In this document: piece by piece, positions 18,001 through 54,953 of the stretch
Position numbering within the stretch: the stretch's first letter is position 1
How the letters are laid out: each line of letters starts with the position of its first letter
Source: Tubulanus polymorphus
Lineage: Eukaryota > Animalia > Nemertea
Assembly: GCF_964204645.1 (NCBI RefSeq)
Contig: NW_027437479.1
Span: 1 to 54,953, forward strand
Reading direction: 5' to 3'
Length of the DNA stretch: 54,953 bases
The notes under the pieces: generated by a model
What the model saw: only the letters and a program-made list of their open reading frames with translations
Told to the model about the DNA's origin: nothing
Database searches by the model: none
Position numbers and translations under genes: made by a program

Positions 18001-20224
18001 TCGGAAAAACGACAATGTCGATGCGTAAAAGCGCTCAAATCGTCAGGAAAAGCACTTTTCGACCCGAAAACGTCGTTCAGCGCGAGAAAAGACGTTTTCT
18101 CATCAAATATTCCCCGTATCGGAAAAACGACGATGTCGATGCGTAAAAGCGCTCAAATCGTCAGGAAAAGCACTTTTCGACCCGAAAACGTCGTTCAGCG
18201 CGAGAAAAGACGTTTTCTCATCACATTTTCCCCGTATCGGAAAAACGACAATGTCGATGCGTAAAAGCGCTCAAATCGTCAGGAAAAGCACATTTCGACC
18301 CGAAAACGTCGTTCAGCGCGAGAAAAGACGTTTTCGTATCAAATATTCCCCCTATCGGAAAAACGACAATGTCGATGCGTAAAAGCGCTCAAATCGTCAG
18401 GAAAAGCACTTTTCGTCTCGAAAACGTCGTTCAGCGCGAGAAAAGACGTTTTCTCATCACATTCTCCCCGTATCGGATAAACGACAATGTAGATGCGTAA
18501 AAGCGCTCAAATCGTCAGGAAAAGCACTTTTCGACCCGAAAACGTCGTTCAGCGCGAGAAAAGACGTTTTTGTATCAAATATTCCCTGTATCGGAAAAAC
18601 GACAATGTCGATGCGTAAAAGCGCTCAAATCGTCAGGAAAAGCACATTTCGACCCGAAAACGTCGTTCAGCGCGAGAAAAGACGTTTTCTCATCACATTT
18701 TCCCCCTATCGGAAAAACGACAATGTCGATGCGTAAAAGCGCTCAAATCGTCAGGAAAAGCACTTTTCGTCGCGAAAACGTCGTTCAGCGCGAGAAAAGA
18801 CGTTTTCGTATCAAATATTCCCCGTATCGGAAAAACGACAATGTCGATGCGTAAAAGCGCTCAAATCGTCAGGAAAAGCACTTTTCGACCCGAAAACGTC
18901 GTTCAGCGCGAGAAAAGACGTTTTCGTATCAAATATTCCCCCTATCGGAAAAACGACAATGTCGATGCGTAAAAGCTCTCAAATCGTCAGGAAAAGCACA
19001 TTTCGACCCGAAAACGTCGTTCAGCGCGAGAAAAGACGTTTTCGTATCAAATATTCCCCCTATCGGAAAAACGACAATGTCGATGCGTAAAAGCGCTCAA
19101 ATCGTCAGGAAAAGCACTTTTCGCTCCGAAAACGTCGTTCAGCGCGAGAAAAGACGTTTTCGTATCAAATATTCCCCCTATCGGAAAAACGACAATGTCG
19201 ATGCGTAAAAGCGCTCAAATCGTCAGGAAAAGCACATTTCGACCCTAAAACGTCGTTCAGCGCGAGAAAAGACGTTTTCTCACCACATTTTCCCCCTATC
19301 GGAAAAACGACAATGTCGATGCGTAAAAGCGCTCAAATCGTCAGGAAAAGCACATTTCGACCCGAAAACGTCGTTCAGCGCGAGAAAAGACGTTTTCTCA
19401 TCACATTTTCCCCGTATCAGAAAAACGACAATGTCGATGCGTAAAAGCGCTCAAATCGTCAGGAAAAGCACATTTCGACCCTAAAACGTCGTTCAGCGCG
19501 AGAAAAGACGTTTTCTCATCACATTTTCCCCCTATCGGAAAAACGACAATGTCGATGCGTAAAAGCGCTCAAATCGTCAGGAAAAGCACATTTCGACCCG
19601 AAAACGTCGTTCAGCGCGAGAAAAGACGTTTTCTCATCACATTTTCCCCGTATCGGAAAAACGACAATGTCGATGCGTAAAAGCGCTCAAATCGTCAGGA
19701 AAAGCACTTTTCGCTCCGAAAACGTCGTTCAGCGCGAGAAAAGACGTTTTCGTATCAAATATTCCCCCTATCGGAAAAACGACAATGTCGATGCGTAAAA
19801 GCGCTCAAATCGTCAGGAAAAGCACTTTTCGTCGCGAAAACGTCGTTCAGCGCGAGAAAAGACGTTTTCTCATCACATTCTCCCCGTATCGGATAAACGA
19901 CAATGTCGATGCGTAAAAGCGCTCAAATCGTCAGGAAAAGCACTTTTCGCTCCGAAAACGTCGTTCAGCGCGAGAAAAGACGTTTTCGTATCAAATATTC
20001 CCCCTATCGGAAAAACGACAATGTCGATGCGTAAAAGCGCTCAAATCGTCAGGAAAAGCACTTTTCGACCCGAAAACGTCGTTCAGCGCGAGAAAAGACG
20101 TTTTCGTATCAAATATTCCCCCTATCGGAAAAACGACGATGTCGATGCGTAAAAGCGCTCAAATCGTCAGGAAAAGCACTTTTCGACCCGAAAACGTCGT
20201 TCAGCGCGAGAAAAGACGTTTTCT
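1..20224. repeat. 118-bp tandem satellite, subfamily/domain A (about 171 monomers)
   Basis: The period is directly visible (gaaaacgtcg at 4 and 122). Consensus is cccgaaaacgtcgttcagcgcgagaaaagacgttttcgtatcaaatattccccctatcggaaaaacgacaatgtcgatgcgtaaaagcgctcaaatcgtcaggaaaagcacttttcga. Diagnostic A alleles are atcaaatatt or atcacatt, gacaatg and tcgtcagg. Confidence 0.98.
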
Positions 20225-35200: not shown

Positions 35201-35674
35201 GACGGGAAAAGCACATTTCGACCCGAAAACGTCGTTCAGCGCGAGAAAAGACGTTTTCGTATCGAATATTCGCCCTATCGGAAAAACGACGATGTCGATG
35301 CGTAAAAGCGCTCAAATCGTCAGGAAAAGCGCATTTCGGCCCGAAAACGTCGTACAGCGCGAGAAAAGACGTTTTCTCGACGGGAAAAGCACATTTCGGT
35401 CCGAAAACGTCGTTCAGCGCGAGAAAAGACGTTTTCTCGTCAATTTCTCCCCGTATCGGAAAAATTATAATGCCGATGCGCAAAAGCGCTCAAATCGACG
35501 GGAAAAGCACATTTCGGCCCGAAAACGTCGTTCAGCGCGAGAAAAGATGTTTTCTCGTCAACTTCTCCCCGTATCGGAAAAATGATAATGTCGATGCGCA
35601 AAAGCGCTCAAATCGACGGGAAAAACACATTTCGGCCCGAAAACGTCGTTCAGCGCGAGAAAAGAAGTTTTCGT
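20225..35674. repeat. 118-bp satellite, subfamily/domain B, left of the retroelement (includes 60-bp truncated monomers)
   Basis: Same core as A but with alleles ctcgtcaacttc, aaatgataatg, tcgacggg, atcgaatatt and tttcggccc or tttcggtcc. The first B-type junction ttttctcgacggg is at about 20,220-20,231. Confidence 0.97.
35661..35674 (+). repeat. Left target-site duplication (14 bp, aaagaagttttcgt)
   Basis: Identical to 39,115-39,128. Both copies carry the minority gaAg allele rather than consensus gaCg, and removing the insert plus one copy restores a normal monomer. Confidence 0.9.
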
Positions 35675-35712
35675 GATGCGTATTTTGTTCCCCTCACCTC
35701 CGGCAAGACTTA
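35675..35712 (-). other. 38-nt 3' tail of the PLE, present only at the 3' (left) end
   Basis: gatgcgtattttgttcccctcacctccggcaagactta lies between the left TSD and the start of the inverted repeat and has no counterpart at the right end. Short 3' tails beyond the pLTR are known for Penelope. Confidence 0.8.
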
Positions 35713-35748
35713 ATAAAATACAGATATTGACTATGACGAGGTGCATCT

Positions 35749-35754
35749 TTTATT
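35749..35754 (-). promoter_or_regulatory. Candidate AATAAA polyadenylation signal just 3' of the hammerhead
   Basis: tttatt on the plus strand, mirrored at 39,073-39,078. It sits in the 3' UTR, but the context is AT-rich so a chance match is possible. Confidence 0.35.
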
Positions 35755-35757
35755 TTC

Positions 35758-35807
35758 TTCACTACAAGACGTTTCGGCCTTCAAGCCTTCATCAATTGAG
35801 AATTGAA
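35758..35807 (-). ncRNA. Minimal type I hammerhead ribozyme motif (left pLTR)
   Basis: The minus strand reads uucaauucucaa-UUGAUGA-a-GGC-uugaag-GCC-GAAA-CGUC-uuguagugaa. This gives a core with a U3 variant, a short stem II, palindromic ACGU as stem III and stem I caa/uug plus bulged extensions. Confidence 0.75.
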
Positions 35808-35939
35808 TTAGACGGTTGAAGCAACAATACATCGTTGATAAGGAAACATTATACCCGCAAATAAAATACAAATATGGAATTTTCAACATGAGAATGAATG
35901 GATTAACAAGTACGAGCTTTCACAGATATATTATACATA

Positions 35940-36046
35940 GTAATAATGATAATCAAAATAATAATAATAACAATAATAATAATAATAATAATTATTATTA
36001 TTATTATTATCATTATTATAATAATAAAAATAATAGTAGTAGTAGC
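35940..36046. repeat. (AAT)n/(TAT)n/(TAG)n microsatellite in the PLE 3' UTR, left copy
   Basis: Visible trinucleotide runs: aac(aat)7(tat)6cat. Confidence 0.9.
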
Positions 36047-36153
36047 CATATGAAATACTGACCTAACACCAATAACGATAACAATAATGTACCACAAGAG
36101 ACAATTTATCAGATGGGGATTTCATTTAAATATCGACATAAACTGAATTAGAA

Positions 36154-38331
36154 TTATCTACGATAGGTATCATCTTCGAGATTAAGGCCACAGGGGGACA
36201 ACGTATTAAGTTTGTGGATGTAGAATGATTCCTTGAGGCGACGTTCAGAAGTAGATTCTACGCTTTCAATGGCAGTAACCGAGATATCTGACAGGCTGTG
36301 ATTGTTTGAATTGAAATGTTGTGCAACGAGGGTGTTAGTGTGATTTTTGGTGATAGAATAAAGATGCTCCCTGAATCTATCACCTAATCTTCGTCCTGTT
36401 TCACCGATATATTTGATATCACATTTGAGGCAAATGAGGCAATAAATGACGTTAGCACTAACGCATGAGAAGGACTGTTTTATACGGACGGATGAATGGC
36501 TCCCCACGATAGATTCAATATTACCTATTACATGATCACATGTTTTACAAATTCTGCGTTGACAAGGGAAAGTGCCAGGAATTTCACATTCCTTATTTAG
36601 TTTAGTACGCACGAGCTTACTCCCAATACATCTGTCATTTTTGAAGCAGGTAAGGAGGTTACTGTCAAAAAGGTGTCCAATGTCATTGTCCTCGGATAGA
36701 ATGTGAAAGTTACGTTTGATAGCACGTGCGACTTTAGAACTATATTGATTGAATGTAAGAACTAGAGGAATTTTATGTTCGGAGCTTTTCACGGTTGTGG
36801 TCAGAGTGGTAGATCTTTCTATTCTACGGCATTTGTCAAGAGCTCTTGATAGGAGATTTTCAGGATAGCCACGTTCAGAGAAAAATATTCTCATGTCGTT
36901 AGATTTAATTTTGAAGTCCTGATTGTCAGAACAAATACGCCTTAGTCGCAAGAATTGGCTAAATGGTATGCTATTGATACATTTAGATGGATGGTTTGAA
37001 TCATATCGAAGATAGCTGTGTGAGTCGGTGTTTTTATAGTGGACTGACGTTTCAATTTTGTTCGGTCCAACACTAAATATGGTGTCAAGAAAAACCTCGG
37101 ATGTATCAGATATGGAGTGAGTTACTTCGATGGACCTATGAAAGCTATTGAAACTTTCGATAAAGTTTTCCAAATTCTCGCGTGACATATCGGTTTTACC
37201 CGCAACATCGTCAATAAATCTAACATAAATGTCCGGTATGGGGCCTTGGAAGCTATCGAAAAAGCATTTCTCAAGATACCCCATGAAAATATTAGCGTAA
37301 ACAGGCCCAAATCGAGTTCCCATGCTAACTCCCGATACTTGGTCGTAAAAACGACCATTAAATTCAAAACAATTTCTTGTGAGCACCAGTTCAGCAAGAC
37401 GCAAAATAGTGACAGTAGGTATAACTGGGTTGCGGTTAAGATCTAAGTAATATTTGAGGGCACGGAGGCCATCAGCATGGGGAATGTTAGTATATAAGGA
37501 TTTTACATCCATGGTAAATAATAGCGTATTTTCGGAAACAGGTACATCCTTAATTAAATTGAGAAAATGGGTAGTATCCCTTACATATGATGGTAGTGTG
37601 GTGACAATATGTTGGAGGTGATCACTTAAAAAGTGTGAGATTCTTTCAGTCGGGCAAGAACATGCTGACACAATCGGTCGGCCGGGATTGTTAAGTTTGT
37701 GAATTTTAGGAAGCATATAAAATATACTACACCTGGGTACATTATTGATAAGCGATGCAGCCGTTTCAGGTAGATTGCCTAAATTAATTTCTTGTTTTAT
37801 AATAGTAGCAATATAGTCATTGTTTTCGATAGTTTTATCGGTTGATAGTTCCACATCAAAGTTCGAGTCTCTGAGTTGACGTTCAGCTTCATTTATGTAT
37901 AGGTCCTTCTGCCAAACTACTATGGCACCACCTTTGTCTGCTTTCTTGATGACTAAATCTTCTCTGGTTTGCAACCTTTTTAGTGCTGTCTGTTCATCAC
38001 GAGTCATGTTAGTCTTTTTGGATCGTGGTGTCTGGATCTGTTCAATTGAATTTTGGCATGTCCTGATGAAATTTGTGATAGCTGTAGGAGTGTCTTCGGG
38101 AATCCATATGCTCTGCTTTTTAGGTTTGTATTTATTGAAGATGGAGGGATCGTCATCGATGTTGTTCAGGTGTTTGTCACGGATGGTTTTGTTGGGATCA
38201 TTAAAGTGAGCATGTAATTTCAATCTTCTGTAAAATTCGTTGACCTGGACCTTCGTGGTTGAAACTTCAGCAGAATTTGTAAAACATGTGATCATGTAAT
38301 AGGTAATATTGAATCTATCGTGGGGAGCCAT
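36154..38331 (-). CDS. PLE polyprotein: reverse transcriptase, Cys-rich linker and GIY-YIG endonuclease (N-terminally truncated; the first ~21 codons derive from the inverted repeat)
   Basis: RT motifs are IKKADKGG, YMLPKIHK..PGRPIVS, LFTMDVKSLYTNIP, QVSGVSMGTRFGPVYANIFM, YVRFIDDV and VFLD. The thumb region reads SIPFSQFLRLRRICS and the linker PCQRRICKTC. The endonuclease reads VIYCLICLKC..YIGET..R..EH..VAQHF..E..YI..LN. There are no internal stops. Confidence 0.95.
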   Translation of the reverse strand: MAPHDRFNITYYMITCFTNSAEVSTTKVQVNEFYRRLKLHAHFNDPNKTIRDKHLNNIDDDPSIFNKYKPKKQSIWIPEDTPTAITNFIRTCQNSIEQIQTPRSKKTNMTRDEQTALKRLQTREDLVIKKADKGGAIVVWQKDLYINEAERQLRDSNFDVELSTDKTIENNDYIATIIKQEINLGNLPETAASLINNVPRCSIFYMLPKIHKLNNPGRPIVSACSCPTERISHFLSDHLQHIVTTLPSYVRDTTHFLNLIKDVPVSENTLLFTMDVKSLYTNIPHADGLRALKYYLDLNRNPVIPTVTILRLAELVLTRNCFEFNGRFYDQVSGVSMGTRFGPVYANIFMGYLEKCFFDSFQGPIPDIYVRFIDDVAGKTDMSRENLENFIESFNSFHRSIEVTHSISDTSEVFLDTIFSVGPNKIETSVHYKNTDSHSYLRYDSNHPSKCINSIPFSQFLRLRRICSDNQDFKIKSNDMRIFFSERGYPENLLSRALDKCRRIERSTTLTTTVKSSEHKIPLVLTFNQYSSKVARAIKRNFHILSEDNDIGHLFDSNLLTCFKNDRCIGSKLVRTKLNKECEIPGTFPCQRRICKTCDHVIGNIESIVGSHSSVRIKQSFSCVSANVIYCLICLKCDIKYIGETGRRLGDRFREHLYSITKNHTNTLVAQHFNSNNHSLSDISVTAIESVESTSERRLKESFYIHKLNTLSPCGLNLEDDTYRR

Positions 38332-38673
38332 TCATCCGTCCGTATAAAACAGTCCTTCTCATGCGTTAGTGCTAACGTCATTTATTGCCTCATTTGCCTC
38401 AAATGTGATATCAAATATATCGGTGAAACAGGACGAAGATTAGGTGATAGATTCAGGGAGCATCTTTATTCTATCACCAAAAATCACACTAACACCCTCG
38501 TTGCACAACATTTCAATTCAAACAATCACAGCCTGTCAGATATCTCGGTTACTGCCATTGAAAGCGTAGAATCTACTTCTGAACGTCGCCTCAAGGAATC
38601 ATTCTACATCCACAAACTTAATACGTTGTCCCCCTGTGGCCTTAATCTCGAAGATGATACCTATCGTAGATAA
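38270..38673 (+). pseudogene. Inverted duplicate of the GIY-YIG endonuclease-coding 3' end of the PLE ORF
   Basis: The track ORF 38,320-38,673 matches the C-terminal ~117 aa of the large ORF apart from the assigned start. It has no ATG of its own (GTG). Confidence 0.85.
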
Positions 38674-38780
38674 TTCTAATTCAGTTTATGTCGATATTTA
38701 AATGAAATCCCCATCTGATAAATTGTCTCTTGTGGTACATTATTGTTATCGTTATTGGTGTTAGGTCAGTATTTCATATG

Positions 38781-38887
38781 GCTACTACTACTATTATTTT
38801 TATTATTATAATAATGATAATAATAATAATAATAATAATAATTATTATTATTATTGTTATTATTATTATTTTGATTATCATTATTAC
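38781..38887. repeat. (ATA)n/(ATT)n microsatellite, right copy
   Basis: atg(ata)8(att)5gtt, the mirror of the left microsatellite with a shifted centre. Confidence 0.9.
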
Positions 38888-39019
38888 TATGTATAATATA
38901 TCTGTGAAAGCTCGTACTTGTTAATCCATTCATTCTCATGTTGAAAATTCCATATTTGTATTTTATTTGCGGGTATAATGTTTCCTTATCAACGATGTAT
39001 TGTTGCTTCAACCGTCTAA

Positions 39020-39069
39020 TTCAATTCTCAATTGATGAAGGCTTGAAGGCCGAAACGTCTTGTAGTGAA
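39020..39069 (+). ncRNA. Minimal type I hammerhead ribozyme motif (right pLTR)
   Basis: ttgatga at 39,032-39,038, stem II ggc (39,040-42) with gcc (39,049-51), and gaaacgtc at 39,052-39,059. Predicted cleavage is after C39,059. Confidence 0.75.
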
Positions 39070-39114
39070 GAAAATAAAAGATGCACCTCGTCATAGTCAA
39101 TATCTGTATTTTAT

Positions 39115-39128
39115 AAAGAAGTTTTCGT
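39115..39128 (+). repeat. Right target-site duplication (14 bp, aaagaagttttcgt)
   Basis: Identical to 35,661-35,674. The satellite resumes in register (atcgaatattcc). Confidence 0.9.
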
Positions 39129-42100
39129 ATCGAATATTCCCCCTATCGGAAAAACGACGATGTCGATGCGTAAAAGCGCTCAAATCGTCAGGAAAAGCAC
39201 ATTTCGGCCCGAAAACGTCGTTCAGCGCGAGAAAAGACGTTTTCTCGTCAACTTCTCCCCGTATCGGAAAAATGATAATGTCGATGCGTAAAAGCGCTCA
39301 AATCGTCAGGAAAAGCACTTTTCGACCCGAAAACGTCGTTCAGCGCGAGAAAAGACGTTTTCTCGACGGGAAAAGCACATTTCGGCCCGAAAACGTCGTT
39401 CAGCGCGAGAAAAGACGTTTTCTCGTCAACTTCTCCCCGTATCGGAAAAATGATAATGCCGATGCGCAAAAGCGCTCAAATCGACGGGAAAAGCACATTT
39501 CGACCCGAAAACGTCGTTCAGCGCGAGAAAAGACGTTTTCGTATCGAATATTGCCCCTATCGGAAAAACGACGACGTCGATGCGTAAAAGCGCTCAAATC
39601 GTCAGGAAAAGCACTTTTCGACCCGAAAACGTCGTTCAGCGCGAGAAAAGACGTTTTCTCGACGGGAAAAGCACATTTCGGTCCAAAAACGTCGTTCAGC
39701 GCGAGAAAAGACGTTTTTTCGTCAACTTCTCCCCGTATCGGAAAAATGATAATGTCGATGCGTAAAAGCGCTCAAATCGACGGGAAAAGCACATTTCGGT
39801 CCGAAAACGTCGTTCAGCGCGAGAAAAGACGTTTTCTCGTCAACTTCTCCCCGTATCGGAAAAATGATAATGCCGATGCGCAAAAGCGCTCAAATCGACG
39901 GGAAAATCACATTTCGGCCCGAAAACGTCGTTCAGCGCGAGAAAAGACGTTTTCTCGTCAACTTCTCCCCGTATCGGAAAAATAATAATGTCGATGCGTA
40001 AAAGCGCTCAAATCGACGGGAAAAGCACATTTCGACCCGAAAACGTCGTTCAGCGCGAGAAAAGACGTTTTCTCGACGGGAAAAGCACATTTCGGTCCGA
40101 AAACGTCGTTCAGCGCGAGAAAAGACGTTTTCTCGTCAACTTCTCCCCGTATCGGAAAAATGATAATGCCGATGCGCAAAAGCGCTCAAATCGACGGGAA
40201 AAGCACATTTCGGTCCGAAAACGTCGTACAGCGCGAGAAAAGACGTTTTCTCGTCAACTTCTCCCCGTATCGGAAAAACGACGATGTCGATGCGTAAAAG
40301 CGCTCAAATCGTCAGGAAAAGCACATTTCGGCCCGAAAACGTCGTACAGCGCGAGAAAAGACGTTTTCTCGACGGGAAAAGCACATTTCGGTCCGAAAAC
40401 GTCGTTCAGCGCGAGAAAAGACGTTTTCTCGTCAATTTCTCCCCGTATCGGAAAAATTATAATGCCGATGCGCAAAAGCGCTCAAATCGACGGGAAAAGC
40501 ACATTTCGGCCCGAAAACGTCGTTCAGCGCGAGAAAAGACGTTTTCTCGTCAACTTCTCCCCGTATCGGAAAAATGATAATGTCGATGCGTAAAAGCGCT
40601 CAAATCGTCAGGAAAAGCACTTTTCGACCCGAAAACGTCGTTCAGCGCGAGAAAAGACGTTTTCGTATCGAATATTCCCCCTATCGGAAAAACGACGATG
40701 TCGATGCGTAAAAGCGCTCAAATCGTCAGGAAAAGCACTTTTCGACCCGAAAACGTCGTTCAGCGCGAGAAAAGACGTTTTCGTATCGAATATTCCCCCT
40801 ATCGGAAAAACGACGATGTCGATGCGTAAAAGCGCTCAAATCGTCAGGAAAAGCGCATTTCGGCCCGAAAACGTCGTTCAGTGCGAGAAAAGACGTTTTC
40901 TCGTCACATCTCCCCGTATCGGAAAAATGATAATGTCGATGCGTAAAAGCGCTCAAATCGACGGGAAAAGCACATTTCGACCCGAAAACGTCGTTCAGCG
41001 CGAGAAAAGACGTTTTCGTATCGAATATTCCCCCTATCGGAAAAACGACGATGTCGATGCGTAAAAGCGCTCAAATCGTCAGGAAAAGCACATTTCGGCC
41101 CGAAAACGTCGTTCAGCGCGAGAAAAGACGTTTTCTCGTCAACTTCTCCCCGTATCGGAAAAATGATAATGCCGATGCGCAAAAGCGCTCAAATCGACGG
41201 GAAAAACACATTTCGGCCCGAAAACGTCGTTCAGCGCGAGAAAAGACGTTTTCGTATCGAATATTCCCCCTATCGGAAAAACGACGATGTCGATGCGCAA
41301 AAGCGCTCAAATCGACGGGAAAAGCACATTTCGGCCCGAAAACGTCGTTCAGCGCGAGAAAAGACGTTTTCTCGTCAACTTCTCCCCGTATCGGAAAAAT
41401 GATAATGTCGATGCGTAAAAGCGCTCAAATCGACGGGAAAAGCACATTTCGACCCGAAAACGTCGTTCAGCGCGAGAAAAGACGTTTTCGTATCGAATAT
41501 TCGCCCTATCGGAAAAACGACGATGTCGATGCGTAAAAGCGCTCAAATCGTCAGGAAAAGCGCATTTCGGCCCGAAAACGTCGTTCAGCGCGAGAAAAGA
41601 CGTTTTCTAGTCAACTTCTCCCCGTATCGGAAAAATGATAATGCCGATGCGCAAAAGCGCTCAAATCGACGGGAAAAGCACATTTCGGCCCGAAAACGTC
41701 GTTCAGCGCGAGAAAAGACGTTTTCTCGTCAACTTCTCCCCGTATCGGAAAAATGATAATGTCGATGCGTAAAAGCTCTCAAATCGACGGGAAAAGCACA
41801 TATCGACCCGAAAACGTCGTTCAGCGGGAGAAAAGACGTTTTCGTATCGAATATTCGCCCTATCGGAAAAACGACGATGTCGATGCGTAAAAGCGCTCAA
41901 ATCGTCAGGAAAAGCACATTTCGGCCCGAAAACGTCGTACAGCGCGAGAAAAGACGTTTTCTCGACGGGAAAAGCACATTTCGGTCCGAAAACGTCGTTC
42001 AGCGCGAGAAACGACGTTTTCTCGTCAATTTCTCCCCGTATCGGAAAAATTATAATGCCGATGCGCAAAAGCGCTCAAATCGACGGGAAAAGCACATTTC

Positions 42101-45100
42101 GGCCCGAAAACGTCGTTCAGCGTGAGAAAAGATGTTTTCTCGTCAACTTCTCCCCGTATCGGGAAAATGATAATGTCGATGCGTAAAAGCGCTCAAATCG
42201 ACGGGAAAAGCACATTTCGACCCGAAAACGTCGTTCAGCGCGAGAAAAGACGTTTTCGTATCGAATATTCGCCCTATCGGAAAAACGACGATGTCGATGC
42301 GTAAAAGCGCTCAAATCGTCAGGAAAAGCGCATTTCGGCCCGAAAACGTCGTTCAGCGCGAGAAAAGACGTTTTCTCGTCAACTTCTCCCCGTATCGGAA
42401 AAATGATAATGCCGATGCGCAAAAGCGCTCAAATCGACGGGAAAAGCACATTCCGACCCGAAAACGTCGTTCAGCGCGAGAAAAGACGTTTTCTCGACGG
42501 GAAAAGCACATTTCGGTCCGAAAACGTCGTTCAGCGCGAGAAAAGACGTTTTCTCGTCAACTTCTCCCCGTATCGGAAAAATGATAATGCCGATGCGCAA
42601 AAGCGCTCAAATCGACGGGAAAAGCACATTTCGGTCCGAAAACGTCGTACAGCGCGAGAAAAGACGTTTTCTAGTCAACTTCTCCCCGTATCGGAAAAAT
42701 GATAATGTCGATGCGCAAAAGCGCTCGAATCGTCAGGAAAAGCACTTTTCGACTCGAAAACGTCGTTCAGCGCGAGAAAAGACGTTTTCGTATCAAATAT
42801 TCCCCCTATGGGAAAAACCACAATGTCGATGCGTAAAAGCGCTCAAATCGTCAGGAAAACCACTTTTCGACTCGAAAACGTCATTCAGCGCGAGAAAAGA
42901 CGTTTTCGTATCGAATATTCGCCCTATCGGAAAAACGACGATGTCGATGCGTAAAAGCGCTCAAATCGTAAGGAAAAGCACATTTCGGCCCGAAAACGTC
43001 GTACAGCGCGAGAAAAGACGTTTTCTCGACGGGAAAAGCACATTTCGGTCCGAAAACGTCGTTCAGCGCGAGAAAAGACGTTTTCTCGTCAACTTCTCTC
43101 CGTATCGGAAAAATTATAATGCCGATGCGCAAAAGCGCTCAAATCGACGGGAAAAGCATATTTCGGCCCGAAAACGTCGTTCAGCGCGAGAAAAGACGTT
43201 TTCTCGTCAACTTCTCCCCGTATCGGAAAAATGATAATGTCGATGCGCAAAAGCGCTCAAATCGACGGGAAAAACACATTTCGGCCCGAAAACGTCGTTC
43301 AGCGCGAGAAAAGACGTTTTCTCGTCAACTTCTCCCCGTATCGGAAAAATGATAATGCCGATGCGCAAAAGCGCTCAAATCGACGGGAAAAGCACATTTC
43401 GACCCGAAAACGTCGTTCAGCGCGAGAAAAGACGTTTTCGTATCGAATATTCGCCCTATCGGAAAAACGACGATGTCGATGCGTAAAAGCGCTCAAATCG
43501 TCAGGAAAAGCGCATTTCGGCCCGAAAACGTCGTTCAGCGCGAGAAAAGACGTTTTCTCGTCAACTTCTCCCCGTATCGGAAAAATGATAATGCCGATGC
43601 GCAAAAGCGCTCAAATCGACGGGAAAAGCACATATCGACCCGAAAACGTCGTTCAGCGCGAGAAAAGACGTTTTCGTATCGAATATTCCCCCTATCGGAA
43701 AAACGACGATGTCGATGCGTAAAAGCGCTCAAATCGTCAGGAAAAGCACATTTCGGCCCGAAAACGTCGTACAGCGCGAGAAAAGACGTTTTCTCGACGG
43801 GAAAAGCACATTTCGGTCCGAAAACGTCGTTCAGCGCGAGAAAAGACGTTTTCTCGTCAATTTCTCCCCGTATCGGAAAAATTATAATGCCGATGCGCAA
43901 AAGCGCTCAAATCGACGGGAAAAGCACATTTCGGCCCGAAAACGTCGTTCAGCGCGAGAAAAGATGTTTTCTCGTCAACTTCTCCCCGTATCGGAAAAAT
44001 GATAATGTCGATGCGCAAAAGCGCTCAAATCGACGGGAAAAACACATTTCGGCCCGAAAACGTCGTTCAGCGCGAGAAAAGAAGTTTTCGTATCGAATAT
44101 TCCCCCTATCGGAAAAACGACGATGTCGATGCGTAAAAGCGCTCAAATCGTCAGGAAAAGCACATTTCGGCCCGAAAACGTCGTTCAGCGCGAGAAAAGA
44201 CGTTTTCTCGTCAACTTCTCCCCGTATCGGAAAAATGATAATGTCGATGCGTAAAAGCGCTCAAATCGTCAGGAAAAGCACTTTTCGACCCGAAAACGTC
44301 GTTCAGCGCGAGAAAAGACGTTTTCTCGACGGGAAAAGCACATTTCGGTCCGAAAACGTCGTTCAGCGCGAGAAAAGACGTTTTCGTATCGAATATTGCC
44401 CCTATCGGAAAAACGACGACGTCGATGCGTAAAAGCGCTCAAATCGTCAGGAAAAGCACATTTCGGCCCGAAAACGTCGTTCAGCGCGAGAAAAGACGTT
44501 TTCTCGACGGGAAAAGCACATTTCGGTCCGAAAACGTCGTTCAGTGCGAGAAAAGACGTTTTCTCGTCAATTTCTCCCCGTATCGCAAAAATGATAATGT
44601 CGAAGCGCAAAAGCGCTCAAATCGACGGGAAAAGCACATTTCGGTCCGAAAACGTCGTTCAGCGCGAGAAAAGACGTTTTCTCGTCAACTTCTCCCCGTA
44701 TCGGAAAATGATAATGTCGATGCGTAAATGCGCTCAAATCGACGGGAAAAGCACATTTCGGCCCGAAAACGTCGTACAGCGCGAGAAAAGACGTTTTCTC
44801 GTCAACTTCTCCCCGTATCGGAAAAATGATAATGCCGATGCGCAAAAGCGCTCAAATCGACGGGAAAAGCACATTTCGGCCCGAAAACGTCGTTCAGCGC
44901 GAGAAAAGACGTTTTCTCGTCAACTTCTCCCCGTATCGGAAAAATGATAATGCCGATGCGCAAAAGCGCTTAAATCGACGGGAAAAGCACATTTCGGCCC
45001 GAAAACGTCGTTCAGCGCGAGAAAAGACGTTTTCTCGTCAACTTCTCCCCGTATCGGAAAAATGATAATGTTGATGCGCAAAAGCGGTCAAATCGACGGG

Positions 45101-48100
45101 AAAAACAAATTTCGGCCCGAAAACGTCGTTCAGCGCGAGAAAAGAAGTTTTCGTATCGAATATTCCCCCTATCGGAAAAACGACGATGTCGATGCGTAAA
45201 AGCGCTCAAATCGTCAGGAAAAGCACATTTCGGCCCGAAAACGTCGTTCAGCGCGAGAAAAGACGTTTTCTCGTCAACTTCTCCCCGTATCGGAAAAATG
45301 ATAATGTCGATGCGTAAAAGCGCTCAAATCGTCAGGAAAAGCACTTTTCGACCCGAAAACGTCGTTCAGCGCGAGAAAAGACGTTTTTGTATCGAATATT
45401 CGCCCTATCGGAAAAACGACGATGTCGATGCGTAAAAGCGCTCAAATCGTCAGGAAAAGCACATTTCGGCCCGAAAACGTCGTACAGCACGAGAAAAGAC
45501 GTTTTCTCGACGGGAAAAGCACATTTCGGTCCGAAAACGTCGTTCAGCGCGAGAAAAGACGTTTTCTCGTCAATTTCTCCCCGTATCGCAAAAATGATAA
45601 TGTCGAAGCGCAAAAGCGCTCAAATCGACGGGAAAAGCACATTTCGGTCCGAAAACGTCGTTCAGCGCGAGAAAAGACGTTTTCTCGTCAACTTCTCCCC
45701 GTATCGGAAAAATGATAATGTCGATGCGTAAATGCGCTCAAATCGACGGGAAAAGCACATTTCGGCCCGAAAACGTCGTTCAGCGCGAGAAAAGACGTTT
45801 TCTCGTCACATTCTCCCCGTATCGGAAAATGATAATGTCGATGCGTAAAAGCGCTCAAATCGACGGGAAAAGCACATTTCGACCCGAAAACGTCGTTCAG
45901 CGCGAGAAAAGACGTTTTCGTATCGAATATTCCCCCTATCGGAAAAACGACGATGTCGATGCGTAAAAGCGCTCAAATCGTCAGGAAAAGCACATTTCGG
46001 CCCGAAAACGTCGTTCAGCGCGAGAAAAGACGTTTTCTCGTCAACTTCTCCCCGTATCGGAAAAATGATAATGCCGATGCGCAAAAGCGCTCAAATCGAC
46101 GGGAAAAGCACATTTCGGCCCGAAAACGTCGTTCAGCGCGAGAAAAGACGTTTTCTCGTCAACTTCTCCCCGTATCGGAAAAATGATAATGTCGATGCGC
46201 AAAAGCGCTCAAATCGACGGGAAAAACACATTTCGGTCCGAAAACGTCGTTCAGCGCGAGAAAAGACGTTTTCGTATCGAATATTCGCCCTATCGGAAAA
46301 ACGACGATGTCGATGCGTAAAAGCGCTCAAATCGTCAGGAAAAGCACATTTCGGCCCGAAAACGTCGTTCAGCGCGAGAAAAGACGTTTTCTCGTCAACT
46401 TCTCCCCGTATCGGAAAAATGATAATGTCGATGCGTAAAAGCGCTCAAATCGACGGGAAAAGCACATTTCGACCCGAAAACGTCGTTCAGCGCGAGAAAA
46501 GACGTTTTCGTATCGAATATTCGCCCTATCGGAAAAACGACGATGTCGATGCGTAAAAGCGCTCAAATCGTCAGGAAAAGCGCATTTCGGCCCGAAAACG
46601 TCGTACAGCGCGAGAAAAGACGTTTTCTCGACGGGAAAAGCACATTTCGGTCCGAAAACGTCGTTCAGCGCGAGAAAAGACGTTTTCTCGTCAATTTCTC
46701 CCCGTATCGGAAAAATTATAATGCCGATGCGCAAAAGCGCTCAAATCGACGGGAAAAGCACATTTCGGCCCGAAAACGTCGTTCAGCGCGAGAAAAGATG
46801 TTTTCTCGTCAACTTCTCCCCGTATCGGAAAAATGATAATGTCGATGCGCAAAAGCGCTCAAATCGACGGGAAAAACACATTTCGGCCCGAAAACGTCGT
46901 TCAGCGCGAGAAAAGAAGTTTTCGTATCGAATATTCCCCCTATCGGAAAAACGACGATGTCGATGCGTAAAAGCGCTCAAATCGTCAGGAAAAGCACATT
47001 TCGGCCCGAAAACGTCGTTCAGCGCGAGAAAAGACGTTTTCTCGTCAACTTCTCCCCGTATCGGAAAAATGATAATGTCGATGCGTAAAAGCGCTCAAAT
47101 CGTCAGGAAAAGCACTTTTCGACCCGAAAACGTCGTTCAGCGCGAGAAAAGACGTTTTCTCGACGGGAAAAGCACATTTCGGCCCGAAAACGTCGTTCAG
47201 CGCGAGAAAGACGTTTTCTCGTCAACTTCTCCCCGTATCGGAAAAATGATAATGCCGATGCGCAAAAGCGCTCAAATCGACGGGAAAAGCACATTTCGAC
47301 CCGAAAACGTCGTTCAGCGCGAGAAAAGACGTTTTCGTATCGAATATTGCCCCTATCGGAAAAACGACGACGTCGATGCGTAAAAGCGCTCAAATCGTCA
47401 GGAAAAGCACTTTTCGACCCGAAAACGTCGTTCAGCGCGAGAAAAGACGTTTTCTCGACGGGAAAAGCACATTTCGGTCCAAAAACGTCGTTCAGCGCGA
47501 GAAAAGACGTTTTTTCGTCAACTTCTCCCCGTATCGGAAAAATGATAATGTCGTTGCGTAAAAGCGCTCAAATCGACGGGAAAAGCACATTTCGGTCCGA
47601 AAACGTCGTTCAGCGCGAGAAAAGACGTTTTCTCGTCAACTTCTCCCCGTATCGGAAAAATGATAATGCCGATGCGCAAAAGCGCTCAAATCGACGGGAA
47701 AATCACATTTCGGCCCGAAAACGTCGTTCAGCGCGAGAAAAGACGTTTTCTCGTCAACTTCTCCCCGTATCGGAAAAATGATAATGTCGATGCGTAAAAG
47801 CGCTCAAATCGACGGGAAAAGCACATTTCGACCCGAAACGTCGTTCAGCGCGAGAAAAGACGTTTTCTCGACGGGAAAAGCACATTTCGGTCCGAAAACG
47901 TCGTTCAGCGCGAGAAAAGACGTTTTCTCGTCAACTTCTCCCCGTATCGGAAAAATGATAATGCCGATGCGCAAAAGCGCTCAAATCGACGGGAAAAGCA
48001 CATTTCGGTCCGAAAACGTCGTACAGCGCGAGAAAAGACGTTTTCTCGTCAACTTCTCCCCGTATCGGAAAAACGACGATGTCGATGCGTAAAAGCGCTC

Positions 48101-51100
48101 AAATCGTCAGGAAAAGCACATTTCGGCCCGAAAACGTCGTACAGCGCGAGAAAAGACGTTTTCTCGACGGGAAAAGCACATTTCGGTCCGAAAACGTCGT
48201 TCAGCGCGAGAAAAGACGTTTTCTCGTCAATTTCTCCCCGTATCGGAAAAATTATAATGCCGATGCGCAAAAGCGCTCAAAATCGACGGGAAAAGCACAT
48301 TTCGGCCCGAAAACGTCGTTCAGCGCGAGAAAAGACGTTTTCTCGTCAACTTCTCCCGTATCGGAAAATGATAATGTCGATGCGCAAAAGCGCTCAAATC
48401 GACGGGAAAAACACATTTCGGCCCGAAAACGTCGTTCAGCGCGAGAAAAGAAGTTTTCGTATCGAATATTCCCCCTATCGGAAAAACGACGATGTCGATG
48501 CGTAAAAGCGCTCAAATCGTCAGGAAAAGCACATTTCGGCCCGAAAACGTCGTTCAGCGCGAGAAAAGACGTTTTCTCGTCAACTTCTCCCCGTATCGGA
48601 AAAATGATAATGTCGATGCGTAAAAGCGCTCAAATCGTCAGGAAAAGCACTTTTCGACCCGAAAACGTCGTTCAGCGCGAGAAAAGACGTTTTCTCGACG
48701 GGAAAAGCACATTTCGGTCCGAAAACGTCGTTCAGCGCGAGAAAAGACGTTTTCGTATCGAATATTGCCCCTATCGGAAAAACGACGACGTCGATGCGTA
48801 AAAGCGCTCAAATCGTCAGGAAAAGCACTTTTCGACCCGAAAACGTCGTTCAGCGCGAGAAAAGACGTTTTCTCGACGGGGAAAAGCACATTTCGGTCCG
48901 AAAACGTCGTTCAGCGCGAGAAAAGACGTTTTCTCGTCAACTTCTCCCCGTATCGGAAAAATGATAATGCCGATGCGCAAAAGCGCTCAAATCGACGGGA
49001 AAAGCACATTTCGGTCCGAAAACGTCGTACAGCGCGAGAAAAGACGTTTTCTCGTCAACTTCTCCCCGTATCGGAAAAACGACGATGTCGATGCGTAAAA
49101 GCGCTCAAATCGTCAGGAAAAGCACATTTCGGCCCGAAAACGTCGTACAGCGCGAGAAAAGACGTTTTCTCGACGGGAAAAGCACATTTCGGTCCGAAAA
49201 CGTCGTTCAGCGCGAGAAAAGACGTTTTCTCGTCAATTTCTCCCCGTATCGGAAAAATTATAATGCCGATGCGCAAAAGCGCTCAAATCGACGGGAAAAG
49301 CACATTTCGGCCCGAAAACGTCGTTCAGCGCGAGAAAAGACGTTTTCTCGTCAACTTCTCCCCGTATCGGAAAAATGATAATGTCGATGCGCAAAAGCGC
49401 TCAAATCGACGGGAAAAACACATTTCGGCCCGAAAACGTCGTTCAGCGCGAGAAAAGAAGTTTTCGTATCGAATATTCCCCCTATCGGAAAAACGACGAT
49501 GTCGATGCGTAAAAGCGCTCAAATCGTCAGGAAAAGCACATTTCGGCCCGAAAACGTCGTTCAGCGCGAGAAAAGACGTTTTCTCGTCAACTTCTCCCCG
49601 TATCGGAAAAATGATAATGTCGATGCGTAAAAGCGCTCAAATCGTCAGGAAAAGCACTTTTCGACCCGAAAACGTCGTTCAGCGCGAGAAAAGACGTTTT
49701 CTCGACGGGAAAAGCACATTTCGGTCCGAAAACGTCGTTCAGCGCGAGAAAAGACGTTTTCGTATCGAATATTGCCCCTATCGGAAAAACGACGACGTCG
49801 ATGCGTAAAAGCGCTCAAATCGTCAGGAAAAGCACTTTTCGACCCGAAAACGTCGTTCAGCGCGAGAAAAGACGTTTTCTCGACGGGAAAAGCACATTTC
49901 GGTCCGAAAACGTCGTTCAGCGCGAGAAAAGACGTTTTCTCGTCAACATCTCCCCGTATCGGAAAAATGATAATGTCGATGCGTAAAAGCGCTCAAATCG
50001 ACGGGAAAAGCACATTTCGGTCCGAAAACGTCGTTCAGCGCGAGAAAAGACGTTTTCTCGTCAACTTCTCCCCGTATCGGAAAAATGATAATGCCGATGC
50101 GCAAAAGCACTCAAATCGACGGGAAAAGCACATTTCGGCCCGAAAACGTCGTTCAGCGCGAGAAAAGACGTTTTCTCGTCAACTTCTCCCCGTATCGGAA
50201 AAATGATAATGTCGATGCGTAAAAGCGCTCAAATCGACGGGAAAAGCACATTCCGACCCGAAAACGTCGTTCAGCGCGAGAAAAGACGTTTTCTCGACGG
50301 GAAAAGCACATTTCGGTCCGAAAACGTCGTTCAGCGCGAGAAAAGACGTTTTCTCGTCAACTTCTCCCCGTATCGGAAAAATGATAATGCCGATGCGCAA
50401 AAGCGCTCAAATCGACGGGAAAAGCACATTTCGGTCCGAAAACGTCGTACAGCGCGAGAAAAGACGTTTTCTCGTCAACTTCTCCCCGTATCGGAAAAAT
50501 GATAATGCCGATGCGCAAAAGCGCTCAAATCGACGGGAAAAGCACATTTCGGCCCGAAAACGTCGTTCAGCGCGAGAAAAGACGTTTTCTCGTCAACTTC
50601 TCCCCGTATCGGAAAAATGATAATGTCGATGCGCAAAAGCGCTCAAATCGACGGGAAAAACACATTTCGGCCCGAAAACGTCGTTCAGCGCGAGAAAAGA
50701 CGTTTTCGTATCGAATATTCCCCCTATCGGAAAAACGACGATGTCGATGCGTAAAAGCGCTCAAATCGTAAGGAAAAGCACATTTCGGCCCGAAAACGTC
50801 GTTCAGCGCGAGAAAAGACGTTTTCTCGTCAACTTCTCCCCGTATCGGAAAAATGATAATGTCGATGCGTAAAAGCGCTCAAATCGACGGGAAAAGCACA
50901 TTTCGACCCGAAAACGTCGTTCAGCGCGAGAAAAGACGTTTTCGTATCGAATATTCGCCCTATCGGAAAAACGACGATGTCGATGCGTAAAAGCGCTCAA
51001 ATCGTCAGGAAAAGCGCATTTCGGCCCGAAAACGTCGTTCAGCGCGAGAAAAGACGTTTTCTCGTCAACTTCTCCCCGTATCGGAAAAATGATAATGCCG

Positions 51101-52080
51101 ATGCGCAAAAGCGCTCAAATCGACGGGAAAAGCACATTTCGACCCGAAAACGTCGTTCAGCGCGAGAAAAGACGTTTTCGTATCGAATATTCGCCCTATC
51201 GGAAAAACGACGATGTCGATGCGTAAAAGCGCTCAAATCGTCAGGAAAAGCGCATTTCGGCCCGAAAACGTCGTTCAGCGCGAGAAAAGACGTTTTCTCG
51301 TCAACTTCTCCCCGTATCGGAAAAATGATAATGCCGATGCGCAAAAGCGCTCAAATCGACGGGAAAAGCACATTTCGGCCCGAAAACGTCGTTCAGCGCG
51401 AGAAAAGACGTTTTCTCGTCAACTTCTCCCCGTATCGGAAAAATGATAATGTCGATGCGTAAAAGCTCTAAAATCGACGGGAAAAGCACATATCGACCCG
51501 AAAACGTCGTTCAGCGCGAGAAAAGACGTTTTCGTATCGAATATTCCCCCTATCGGAAAAACGACAATGTCGATTCGTAAAAGCGCTCAAATCGTCAGGA
51601 AAAGCACATTTCGGCCCGAAAACGTCGTACAGCGCGAGAAAAGACGTTTTCTCGACGGGAAAAGCACATTTCGGTCCGAAAACGTCGTTCAGCGCGAGAA
51701 AAGACGTTTTCTCGTCAATTTCTCCCCGTATCGGAGAAATTATAATGCCGATGCGCAAAAGCGCTCAAATCGACGGGAAAAGCACATTTCGGCCCGAAAA
51801 CGTCGTTCAGCGCGAGAAAAGACGTTTTCTCGTCAACTTCTCCCCGTATCGGAAAAATGATAATGTCGATGCGCAAAAGCGCTCAAATCGACGGGAAAAA
51901 CACATTTCGGCCCGAAAACGTCGTTCAGCGCGAGAAAAGAAGTTTTCGTATCGAATATTCCCCCTATCGGAAAAACGACGATGTCGATGCGTAAAAGCGC
52001 TCAAATCGTCAGGAAAAGCACATTTCGGCCCGAAAACGTCGTTCAGCGCGAGAAAAGACGTTTTCTCGACGGGAAAAGCA

Positions 52081-52800
52081 CTTTTCGACTCGAAAACGTC
52101 TTTCAGCGCGAGAAAAGACGTTTTCGTATCAAATATTCCCCCTATGGGAAAAACGACAATGTCGATGCGTAAAAGCGCTCAAATCGTCAGGAAAACCACT
52201 TTTCGACTCGAAAACGTCGTTCAGCGCGAGAAAAGACGTTTTCGTATCAAATATTCCCCTTATGGGAAAAACGACAATATCGATGCGTAAAAGCGCTCAA
52301 ATCGTCAGGAAAAGCACTTTTCGACGCGAAAACGTCGTTCAGCGCGAGAAAAGACGTTTTCGTATCAAATATTCCCCCTATCGGAAAAACGGCAATGTCG
52401 GTGCGTAAAAGCGCTCAAATCGTCAGGAAAAGCACTTTTCGACGCGAAAACGTCGTTCAGCGCGAGAAAAGACGTTTTCGTATCAAATATTCCCCCTATG
52501 GGAAAAACGGCAATGTCGATGCGTAAAAGCGCTCAAATCGTCAGGAAAAGCACTTTTCGACGCGAAAACGTCGTTCAGCTCGAGAAAAGACGTTTTCGTA
52601 CCAAATATTCCCCCTATGGGAAAAACGACAATGTCGATGCGTAAAAGCGCTCAAATCGTCAGGAAAAGCACTTTTCGACGCGAAAACGTCGTTCAGCGCG
52701 AGAAAAGACGTTTTCGTATCAAATATTCCCCCTATGGGAAAAACGACAATGTCGATGCGTAAAAGCGCTCAGATCGTCAGGAAAACCACTTTTCGATCCG
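52081..52800. repeat. Patch of variant-C monomers (A-like backbone with cctatggg and tttcgacgcg/tttcgactcg)
   Basis: About six consecutive monomers with atcaaatatt and mostly tatgggaaaa. Similar patches occur at about 32,120-32,283, 42,723-42,886 and 54,548-54,953. Confidence 0.85.
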
Positions 52801-54953
52801 AAAACGTCGTTCAGCGCGAGAAAAGACGTTTTCGTATCGAATATTCCCCCTATCGGAAAAACGACGATGTCGATGCGTAAAAGCGCTCAAATCGTCAGGA
52901 AAAGCACATTTCGGCCCGAAAACGTCGTTCAGCGCGAGAAAAGACGTTTTCTCGTCAACTTCTCCCCGTATTGGAAAAATGATAATGTCGATGCGTAAAA
53001 GCTCTCAAATCGACGGGAAAAGCACATATCGACCCGAAAACGTCGTTCAGCGCGAGAAAAGACGTTTTCGTATCGAATATTCCCCCTATCGGAAAAACGA
53101 CGATGTCGATGCGTAAAAGCGCTCAAATCGTCAGGAAAAGCACATTTCGGCCCGAAAACGTCGTACAGCGCGAGAAAAGACGTTTTCTCGACGGGAAAAG
53201 CACATTTCGGTCCGAAAACGTCGTTCAGCGCGAGAAAAGAAGTTTTCGTATCGAATATTCCCCCTATCGGAAAAACGACGATGTCGATGCGTAAAAGCGC
53301 TCAAATCGTCAGGAAAAGCACATTTCGGCCCGAAAACGTCGTTCAGCGCGAGAAAAGACGTTTTCTCGTCAACTTCTCCCCGTATCGGAAAAATGATAAT
53401 GTCGATGCGTAAAAGCGCTCAAATCGTCAGGAAAAGCACTTTTCGACCCGAAAACGTCGTTCAGCGCGAGAAAAGACGTTTTCTCGACGGGAAAAGCACA
53501 TTTCGGTCCGAAAACGTCGTTCAGCGCGAGAAAAGACGTTTTCGTATCGAATATTGCCCCTATCGGAAAAACGACGACGTCGATGCGTAAAAGCGCTCAA
53601 ATCGTCAGGAAAAGCACTTTTCGACCCGAAAACGTCGTTCAGCGCGAGAAAAGACGTTTTCTCGACGGGAAAAGCACATTTCGGTCCAAAAACGTCGTTC
53701 AGCGCGAGAAAAGACGTTTTCTCGTCAACTTCTCCCCGTATCGGAAAAATGATAATGTCGATGCGTAAAAGCGCTCAAATCGACGGGAAAAGCACATTTC
53801 GGTCCGAAAACGTCGTTCAGCGCGAGAAAAGACGTTTTCTCGTCAACTTCTCCCCGTATCGGAAAAATGATAATGCCGATGCGCAAAAGCGCTCAAATCG
53901 ACGGGAAAAGCACATTTCGACCCGAAAACGTCGTTCAGCGCGAGAAAAGACGTTTTCTCGACGGGAAAAGCACATTTCGGTCCGAAAACGTCGTTCAGCG
54001 CGAGAAAAGACGTTTTCTCGTCAACTTCTCCCCGTATCGGAAAATGATAATGCCGATGCGCAAAAGCGCTCAAATCGACGGGAAAAGCACATTTCGGTCC
54101 GAAAACGTCGTTCAGCGCGAGAAAAGACGTTTTCTCGTCAACTTCTCCCCGTATCGGAAAAATGATAATGTCGATGCGTAAAAGCTCTCAAATCGACGGG
54201 AAAAGCACATATCGACCCGAAAACGTCGTTCAGCGCGAGAAAAGACGTTTTCGTATCGAATATTCCCCCTATCGGAAAAACGACGATGTCGATGCGTAAA
54301 AGCGCTCAAATCGTCAGGAAAAGCACATTTCGGCCCGAAAACGTCGTACAGCGCGAGAAAAGACGTTTTCTCGACGGGAAAAGCACATTTCGGTCCGAAA
54401 ACGTCGTTCAGCGCGAGAAAAGACGTTTTCTCGTCAATTTCTCCCCGTATCGGAAAAATGATAATGCCGATGCGCAAAAGCGCTCAAATCGACGGGAAAA
54501 GCACATTTCGGTCCGAAAACGTCGTTCAGCGCGAGAAAAGACGTTTTCGTATCAAATATTCCCCCTATCGGAAAAACGGCAATGTCGGTGCGTAAAAGCG
54601 CTCAAATCGTCAGGAAAAGCACTTTTCGACGCGAAAACGTCGTTCAGCGCGAGAAAAGACGTTTTCGTATCAAATATTCCCCCTATGGGAAAAACGACAA
54701 TGTCGATGCGTAAAAGCGCTCAAATCGTCAGGAAAAGCACTTTTCGACGCGAAAACGTCGTTCAGCTCGAGAAAAGACGTTTTCGTACCAAATATTCCCC
54801 CTATGGGAAAAACGACAATGTCGATGCGTAAAAGCGCTCAAATCGTCAGGAAAAGCACTTTTCGACGCGAAAACGTCGTTCAGCGCGAGAAAAGACGTTT
54901 TCGTATCAAATATTCCCCCTATGGGAAAAACGACAATGTCGATGTGTAAAGGG

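Follow-up and report, generated by a model that had tools for sequence, protein, structure and literature searches.

The 54,953-bp window analysed here, which is the entire unplaced contig C62 (NW_027437479.1) of the Tubulanus polymorphus assembly (GCF_964204645.1; 268 Mb in 77 contigs), carries within a 118-bp satellite array a 3,440-bp insert (35675–39114) derived from a Penelope-like element (PLE). The reading we favour, to which we assign a probability of about 0.8, is that the insert represents a single insertion, dead on arrival, of a low-copy and very young family of canonical PLEs which carry their GIY-YIG endonuclease at the C-terminus and have a cysteine linker of Neptune type, its location in the satellite being most likely the result of weak target specificity together with tolerance of the insertion. 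An earlier note, prepared from the sequence of the window, had drawn attention to this insert, and that observation has been confirmed: the insert is real.

Structure of the insert and of its target site

The insert consists of two 5'-truncated copies of the element placed head to head, with a 34-nt tail on one end only. As previously noted, its inverted arms (35713–36557 against the reverse complement of 38270–39114) are nearly identical, extending over 845 nt with 2 mismatches, both of which (35987 and 35990) fall within an (AAT)n-like run, and the two halves meet at 38269/38270 with 1 nt of microhomology between them. The same sequence, AAAGAAGTTTTCGT, is found on both flanks (35661–35674 and 39115–39128), and its two copies share one minority variant, an A which replaces the C of the monomer consensus. 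Moreover, the start-to-start distance of the flanking monomers over the insert is 3572, that is, 3440 + 14 + 118, a register which shows that one monomer of the satellite was genuinely duplicated. The duplication had been described as a perfect one of 14 bp, and it is indeed perfect on both sides, but its length should be given as 12–14 bp, since all the family copies continue with AC past the tail and the last GT of the left duplication may therefore belong to the element. The features of the insert and of its surroundings are the following:

1–35674, plus strand: satellite array to the left of the insert (Tandem Repeats Finder, TRF; composition).
35661–35674, no strand: left target-site duplication, AAAGAAGTTTTCGT, the last 2 nt possibly being the terminal AC of the element (flank comparison).
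35675–38269, minus strand: long PLE copy of 2,595 nt, with its tailed 3' end at 35675 and 5'-truncated at 38269 (~600 bp short of the copy on contig C1).
35675–35708, minus strand: 34-nt tail, at this end only, with no counterpart in the inverted arm (for the concept of the tail, PMC8557442, PMC3846280).
35937–36035, no strand: (AAT)n-like low-complexity run of the 3' untranslated region (UTR), with a twin in the other arm at 38792–38890 (TRF).
38270–39114, plus strand: second, inverted and 5'-truncated copy of 845 nt, corresponding to 35713–36557 of the long copy and without the tail.
39115–39128, no strand: right target-site duplication.
39115–54953, plus strand: satellite array to the right of the insert, in register (TRF, monomer spacing).

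According to TRF, repeats based on the 118-bp unit span 1–35672 and 39115–54950, and in a composition scan of the window the GC content falls below the satellite level at 35–39 kb only, so that the contig contains no insert of non-satellite DNA apart from 35675–39114, in agreement with the single unique insertion initially reported. The description of the array as homogeneous had to be qualified: it is uniform (~95%) at 1–20223 only, while from 20224 onwards it is more divergent and shows higher-order periods of 178, 296 and 414 bp, and it is in this divergent part that the insert is located. The change from the uniform to the higher-order-repeat form takes place at 20223, and the array reverts near 54377. 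As regards the monomer itself, it contains a 10-bp dyad (CGAAAACGTC ... GACGTTTTCG, with a spacer of 16 nt), which gives rise to a weak 39-bp TRF period and whose right half is overlapped by the insertion site. The satellite is also crossed by frames without stops, which reach up to 306 aa (39065–39985 and similar), but these are by-products of the repeat and not genes, since the reading frame recurs every 354 bp.

Encoded protein and 5' truncation

An open reading frame (ORF) of 725 aa is found on the minus strand at 36154–38331. Its first 21 codons lie within the inverted arm, which leaves 704 codons as real PLE coding sequence and means that the ATG is there by chance. The Pfam scores of this frame are just below the cut-offs (RVT_1, 28.8 bits; GIY-YIG, 20 bits), and it is a large protein search, not these sub-threshold scores, that settles the family: 2406 proteins were retrieved at E ≤ 1e-10, the top match having 52% identity and E = 1e-226. 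Among the matches listed, the relatives carry RVT_1 Pfam hits and some also GIY-YIG, while the precomputed domain table for the relatives also includes PF28514 and PF26215; most full-length relatives have 890–910 aa, the few named ones being gastropod proteins.

In an alignment with 12 relatives the order of reverse transcriptase (RT), linker and GIY-YIG is identical, and the window frame retains every invariant column. In the RT these comprise ADKGG (the DKG motif), FTMDVKSLY, R-F-IDD and the thumb YK-TDSH-YL, followed, between the RT and the endonuclease, by the linker C569-x4-C574-x2-C577, a CX4CX2C motif invariant across the alignment. The nuclease segment reads VIY-C-LI-C613-LK-C616-D-IK-YIGET and continues with R631, H635, H651, H657, E680 and N696, all of them conserved, although N696 lies just outside the GIY-YIG range (607–688). 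The C-terminal endonuclease is thus a GIY-YIG with the CCHH motif, two cysteines standing between GIY and YIG. A PLE-type RT with DKG, xDD and thumb, together with a C-terminal GIY-YIG/CCHH, corresponds to the endonuclease-bearing (EN+) PLEs, and the assignment to these elements proposed in the earlier note stands. The coding features are:

36154–38268, minus strand: PLE coding sequence of 704 codons plus stop, covering part of the N-terminus and then the RT with its thumb, the linker and GIY-YIG.
38269–38331, minus strand: chance N-terminal extension of 21 codons with the ATG, antisense of the inverted arm.
37930–37938, minus strand: DKG motif, formed by D111-K112-G113 in the 704-aa frame and a hallmark of PLE RTs (alignment; PMC8557442).
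37132–37680, minus strand: RT core, RVT_1 residues 197–379, with the catalytic I352-D353-D354 at 37207–37215 (Pfam, alignment).
36538–36564, minus strand: cysteine-rich linker C569-x4-C574-x2-C577, which fits CX2-5CxxC (alignment; PMC8557442).
36205–36450, minus strand: GIY-YIG, residues 607–688, with Y609, C613, C616, Y620, G622, R631, H635, H651, H657 and E680 kept (Pfam, alignment).

The uninterrupted frame of ~705 codons with RT and GIY-YIG that had been described is, in fact, open over its 704 element codons, but it is 5'-truncated and takes its ATG from the inverted arm. This truncation of the long copy had been overlooked. In the alignment, the relatives have ~215 extra N-terminal residues with conserved motifs, which the window frame does not possess. 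Furthermore, a copy on contig C1 (C1:11749233–11752602), which matches the window copy from the head-to-head junction onward only, goes on for another ~600 bp in the 5' direction, where an open frame includes KTRxxSH..FL, IPxGF and LSKGLKF and aligns with the 890–910-aa relatives. It follows from this extra sequence, and from its conserved N-terminal motifs, that the long copy of the window is 5'-truncated at 38269; the motifs in question (N1–N3 and GxKF/Y) are missing in the window copy and present in the C1 copy (LSKGLKF and others). A search of the assembly did not find the 5' region of the C1 copy in any other copy, and the C1 copy is itself frameshifted by a 1-nt deletion (loss of one C from a CC, opposite window 37903). 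Since this sole 5'-complete copy is frameshifted, the assembly holds no intact full-length copy. Deprived of ~215 N-terminal residues, of the conserved motifs and of the upstream region, the window copy would have been dead on arrival, and it is very unlikely, judging by its sequence, to be autonomous.

Family copies, insertion mechanism and location in the satellite

A census which combined a whole-element search with a 3'-end search, all 17 candidates being scored, gave ~15 loci, five of which are young (at least 96% identity): the window itself, C3:16.83 Mb, C1:11.75 Mb, C10:10.57 Mb and C9:7.69 Mb. The window and C3 copies are ~99% identical. Over the coding part, 5 substitutions and a 1-nt deletion separate the window copy from that of C1, and 3 substitutions separate it from that of C3 (~0.2%), the remaining differences between copies being mostly in the low-complexity 3' UTR. 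This divergence, together with arms that are identical outside the (AAT)n-like run, agrees with the very recent event postulated in the earlier note, and the family is low-copy and very young. In element coordinates (sense strand, position 1 being window 39114 and position 3440 window 35675), the layout of the well-defined loci is:

Window (C62): tailed copy 846–3440; other copy 2558–3406; duplication of 12–14 bp.
C3:16829235–16831451: tailed copy 3249–3440; other copy 1376–3408; duplication of 9–12 bp.
C10:10565111–10565615: tailed copy 3057–3440; other copy 3280–3399; duplication of 10–13 bp.
C1, full-length unit (complex): main copy 845–3440 plus ~600 bp of 5' sequence, preceded by a tandem fragment 3343–3440; other copy 3350–3409; duplication of 11 bp.

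All four of these insertions are head-to-head pairs of 5'-truncated copies, with the 34-nt tail and duplications of 9–14 bp, and in each the tailless copy ends at element 3399–3409, stopping ~35–40 nt short of the tailed end. Head-to-head and tandem 5'-truncated copies with a tail at one end are typical of EN+ PLEs (PMC8557442, PMC3846280). The copies extend from 2 to 12–13 nt past the tail (AC, ACATC, ACATCAA, ACATCAAC and ACATCAACAAAT), and on C1, where an upstream tandem fragment precedes the unit, the bases past the tail are those with which the unit's 5' end begins. No motif is common to the four target sites, AAAGAAGTTTTC, GATGCGTAA, CTTTATCAAT and TTCTAGACTGG.

These structures are consistent with a twin-priming-like model, which fits the insert of the window. 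The endonuclease of the element would nick one target strand, and the RT would prime on the RNA at a variable point 2–13 nt past the tail; the template RNA would then continue into the next unit, as suggested by the copies which, like that of the C1 tandem, run past the tail into the next unit's first bases. A second, staggered nick 10–14 bp away would prime a second cDNA in the opposite direction, and both cDNAs would abort early and then be joined via 1 nt of microhomology.

As regards self-cleaving RNA, no hammerhead ribozyme was detected by Rfam at E ≤ 1 or E ≤ 10 in the element, its 3' end or the 5' region of the C1 copy, and a regular-expression search for the core CUGANGA...GAAA found none on the sense strand, minimal dimeric forms being able to escape both kinds of search. 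A string resembling the hammerhead core on the minus strand of the satellite was discarded, its helix II being unable to form and Rfam giving no match there; likewise, the miRNA-like Rfam matches on C1 reflect only the perfect hairpin of the head-to-head fragments.

Two further observations concern sequences related to the family. The C9 locus (C9:7690747–7691775) is a composite in which a 3' end fragment of the family with 90% identity and an internal RT fragment with 98% identity are joined head to head, unequal identities that suggest two events or two subfamilies. In addition, the AT-rich part of the 3' UTR (window ~35937–36088) is matched at 75–85% by short tandem arrays elsewhere (C10:715347–715908, C10:2764463–2765004, C4:22175886–22176423, C33:13914–14222, C8:16001186–16001481 and C12:4978193–4978645), which could simply be low-complexity sequence of (AAT)n-like type, or else minisatellites with a relationship to the 3' UTR of the PLE.

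With regard to the location of the insert, a 24-mer of the monomer has 10,314 occurrences in the genome at no more than 1 mismatch and 454 in the 51.5 kb of satellite of the window, from which the satellite can be estimated at ~1.17 Mb, or ~0.44% of the assembly. A family directed to this satellite would be expected to have most of its insertions there, ideally at a recurrent site. The flank comparison over all the copies, which the earlier note had named as a check on its suggestion of a satellite-targeting family, speaks both ways: two of the five young loci (window and C3) lie in the satellite, well above its share, while the other three (C1, C10 and C9) and all of the ~10 older fragments are in non-satellite DNA, and the two satellite sites differ. 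The suggestion therefore keeps a second, independent insertion in the same satellite in its favour, but not a shared site or motif. We consider that the location is most likely explained by weak target specificity combined with the tolerance that a transposon-rich region resembling heterochromatin shows towards insertions, a dedicated targeting of the satellite being less likely. In fact, the C3 array (16.76–16.85 Mb) is interrupted by satellite-free blocks of 16–20 kb, and the two sampled as 10 kb each (C3:16765001–16775000 and C3:16787001–16797000) contain ORFs for an rve integrase and an A32-type ATPase (Maverick/Polinton-like), gag and aspartyl protease (long terminal repeat, LTR, type) and an apurinic/apyrimidinic (APE) endonuclease (long interspersed nuclear element, LINE, type), so that the region collects transposons of several classes.

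Several points weigh against this explanation. At a share of 0.44%, the probability of at least 2 of the 5 young loci falling in the satellite is p = 2e-4. Since the window was picked for holding a copy, conditional tests are needed, and with the window copy given p is still 0.017 for at least one of the other 4 young loci. Moreover, the window and C3 inserts are oriented alike with respect to the satellite. To these have to be added that the junctions of the insert were established from the assembly sequence alone, and that the order of the steps of target-primed reverse transcription was deduced from structure only. That the inverted structure, or the whole insert, could be an assembly artefact is, nevertheless, scarcely credible: although C62 is an unplaced 55-kb contig made of repeats, and assembly trouble arising from the inverted and tandem structures of PLEs has been noted (PMC8557442), the clean duplication restores an in-register monomer, and the same architecture, each time with its own duplication, recurs at three loci on chromosome-scale contigs. 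It is just as improbable that the window and C3 copies descend from one ancestral insertion, which an expansion of the array or an unequal exchange would later have duplicated and reshaped. It is true that inserts lying in satellite arrays become duplicated, and that the two copies share their polarity and ~99% of their sequence, but the duplications differ (window AAAGAAGTTTTC(GT) against C3 (GTC)GATGCGTAA), as do the truncations on both arms (846–3440 and 2558–3406 against 3249–3440 and 1376–3408), and deletion alone would not turn either copy into the other, so that the junctions contradict a common event and indicate independent insertions.

A preference of the family for the 118-bp satellite or its chromatin, which would make it a satellite-colonising and possibly centromere-associated PLE, appears unlikely to us, although it deserves to be kept in view. 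Such a preference could be guided by the CX4CX2C linker and the endonuclease reading DNA shape or sequence, or by the 3' end of the RNA annealing to GATGCGTA. Besides the frequency and polarity of the two independent satellite insertions, it is favoured by the C3 junction, where the tailed end of the element borders on satellite sequence whose last bases are GATGCGTAA and the priming nick falls directly after the 8-mer GATGCGTA, identical to the cDNA start; this identity has a ~2.5% chance per event and is a single case, in which RNA–target annealing may have helped to choose the priming site. The linker has also been proposed as repeat-targeting in Neptune and Naiad (PMC8557442). Nevertheless, there are two events only, at sites ~48 bp apart in the monomer and without a shared motif; the majority of the young copies and all the older fragments lie elsewhere, other transposon classes occupy the C3 array region as well, and the complete tail resembles the satellite no better than its own shuffles do, 190 of 500 reaching the observed alignment score, which also led us to reject a derivation of the tail from the satellite. 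Once corrected for ascertainment, p rises to 0.06 for at least one of the other 14 loci, and, for at least one of the other 4 young loci, to 0.078 or 0.19 if the true satellite share, hidden by collapsed arrays, were 2% or 5%. With p of ~0.02–0.06 after ascertainment, satellite preference is suggestive and unproven, two events being too few to carry such a claim.

The interior position of the arrays on C1 (15.70 of 32.06 Mb), C3 (16.76–16.85 of 27.81 Mb) and C12 (7.33–7.68 of 11.55 Mb) also speaks for a preference of this kind, while a centromeric role of the satellite would be speculative. The satellite is present on the unplaced contigs C28, C38, C58 and C62 as well, while the list of 24-mer matches passes from C1 directly to C3, which suggests that C2 is without an array. 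A literature search found nothing on nemertean centromeres, nor any report of a satellite- or centromere-preferring PLE.

Significance and relation to known systems

The insert of the window constitutes a clean, well-resolved case of the standard PLE insertion form, of use for transposon annotation in this ribbon-worm genome and for locating the start of cDNA synthesis, which falls 2–13 nt beyond the tail, among the initial bases of a next unit. What is new is another PLE member, otherwise ordinary in kind, together with the idea of a satellite preference, alive and thinly supported; if the latter were true, the GIY-YIG and the cysteine linker would represent a new targeting module to study. 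To our knowledge, PLEs do not figure among the retroelement classes that colonise satellites or centromeres. In those that do, ATHILA, CRM and G2/Jockey-3, the majority of copies are centromeric, a location backed by CENP-A evidence. The present family resembles them in being a retroelement found in a tandem satellite inside chromosomes, with more than one independent insertion, and differs from them in its class, in having 2 of 5 young copies there without a shared insertion site, and in being known from sequence.

A further parallel is offered by the twin priming of LINE-1, an occasional outcome of an element with an APE-type endonuclease, in which two cDNAs from staggered nicks are joined internally to give an inverted, doubly 5'-truncated insert with one duplication. 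The PLE insert shares this structure; in contrast, the head-to-head form is habitual in PLEs and the nuclease is a GIY-YIG, the mechanism being, on the PLE side, a deduction.

The assembly also contains a second PLE family, 36% identical, with an intact frame of ~830 aa (RT, CX4CX2C linker and GIY-YIG) preceded on C4 by a proline-rich ORF of 523 aa with no Pfam match. It forms head-to-tail arrays with a period of ~6.35 kb that occupy the very beginnings of three contigs of chromosome scale, as well as many unplaced contigs (C4:1–7000, C4:4.5–70 kb, C10:5.6–35 kb, C8:10.6 kb, and the unplaced C30, C34, C54, C63, C65 and C66). These EN+ copies in terminal tandem arrays recall the telomere-associated PLEs without endonuclease; the first 7 kb of C4 showed no telomeric repeat.

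Within the PLEs, which with a GIY-YIG have not been found in mammals (10.64898/2026.07.22.740005), the element of the window is, by its sequence features, an ordinary canonical EN+ member of Neptune/Nematis type. The CCHH motif in the GIY-YIG marks the canonical EN+ PLEs, and the CX2-5CxxC linker is present in Neptune and Nematis, the latter in a reduced form that still carries the Zn-finger-like motif, and missing from Penelope/Poseidon (PMC8557442). The invariant linker accordingly rules out membership of Penelope/Poseidon, represented by Penelope of Drosophila virilis and Pen of Adineta vaga (PMC3846280), with which the element shares the layout of RT and C-terminal GIY-YIG, the inverted 5'-truncated copy, the one-end tail of ~31–40 nt and duplications of 8–15 bp. 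The Hydra clade has DKT for DKG, no CCHH and a CxCX5C linker, and Naiad/Chlamys an N-terminal GIY-YIG (PMC8557442); the former is ruled out by the DKG, CCHH and CX4CX2C of the element, and the latter by the C-terminal position of the endonuclease in the window copy, the C1 copy and all the aligned relatives.

The Neptune clade follows Arkhipova (2006), as that work is presented in PMC8557442 and PMC3846280, and is itself paraphyletic according to PMC8557442. The Neptune label of the earlier note was taken from the linker, whose CX4CX2C does fit the motif of this group; it would fit Nematis too, and a choice of Neptune over Nematis is not established. Most canonical PLEs, although not all, have a hammerhead in the pseudo-LTR, unlike the window and C1 copies, where no canonical core was found. 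The insertion bias to microsatellites reported for Neptune and Naiad is a tendency and not a definition (PMC8557442), and the targets differ here, being the 118-bp satellite and non-satellite DNA, with none of the four defined targets a microsatellite. In the other respects compared, the element agrees with Neptune: a single ORF, a PLE RT with DKG and, in the C1 copy, the N-terminal GxKF motif, the CX2-5CxxC linker, as well as a GIY-YIG/CCHH at the C-terminus, in copies that take head-to-head and tandem forms with a tail at one end and target-site duplications of variable length.

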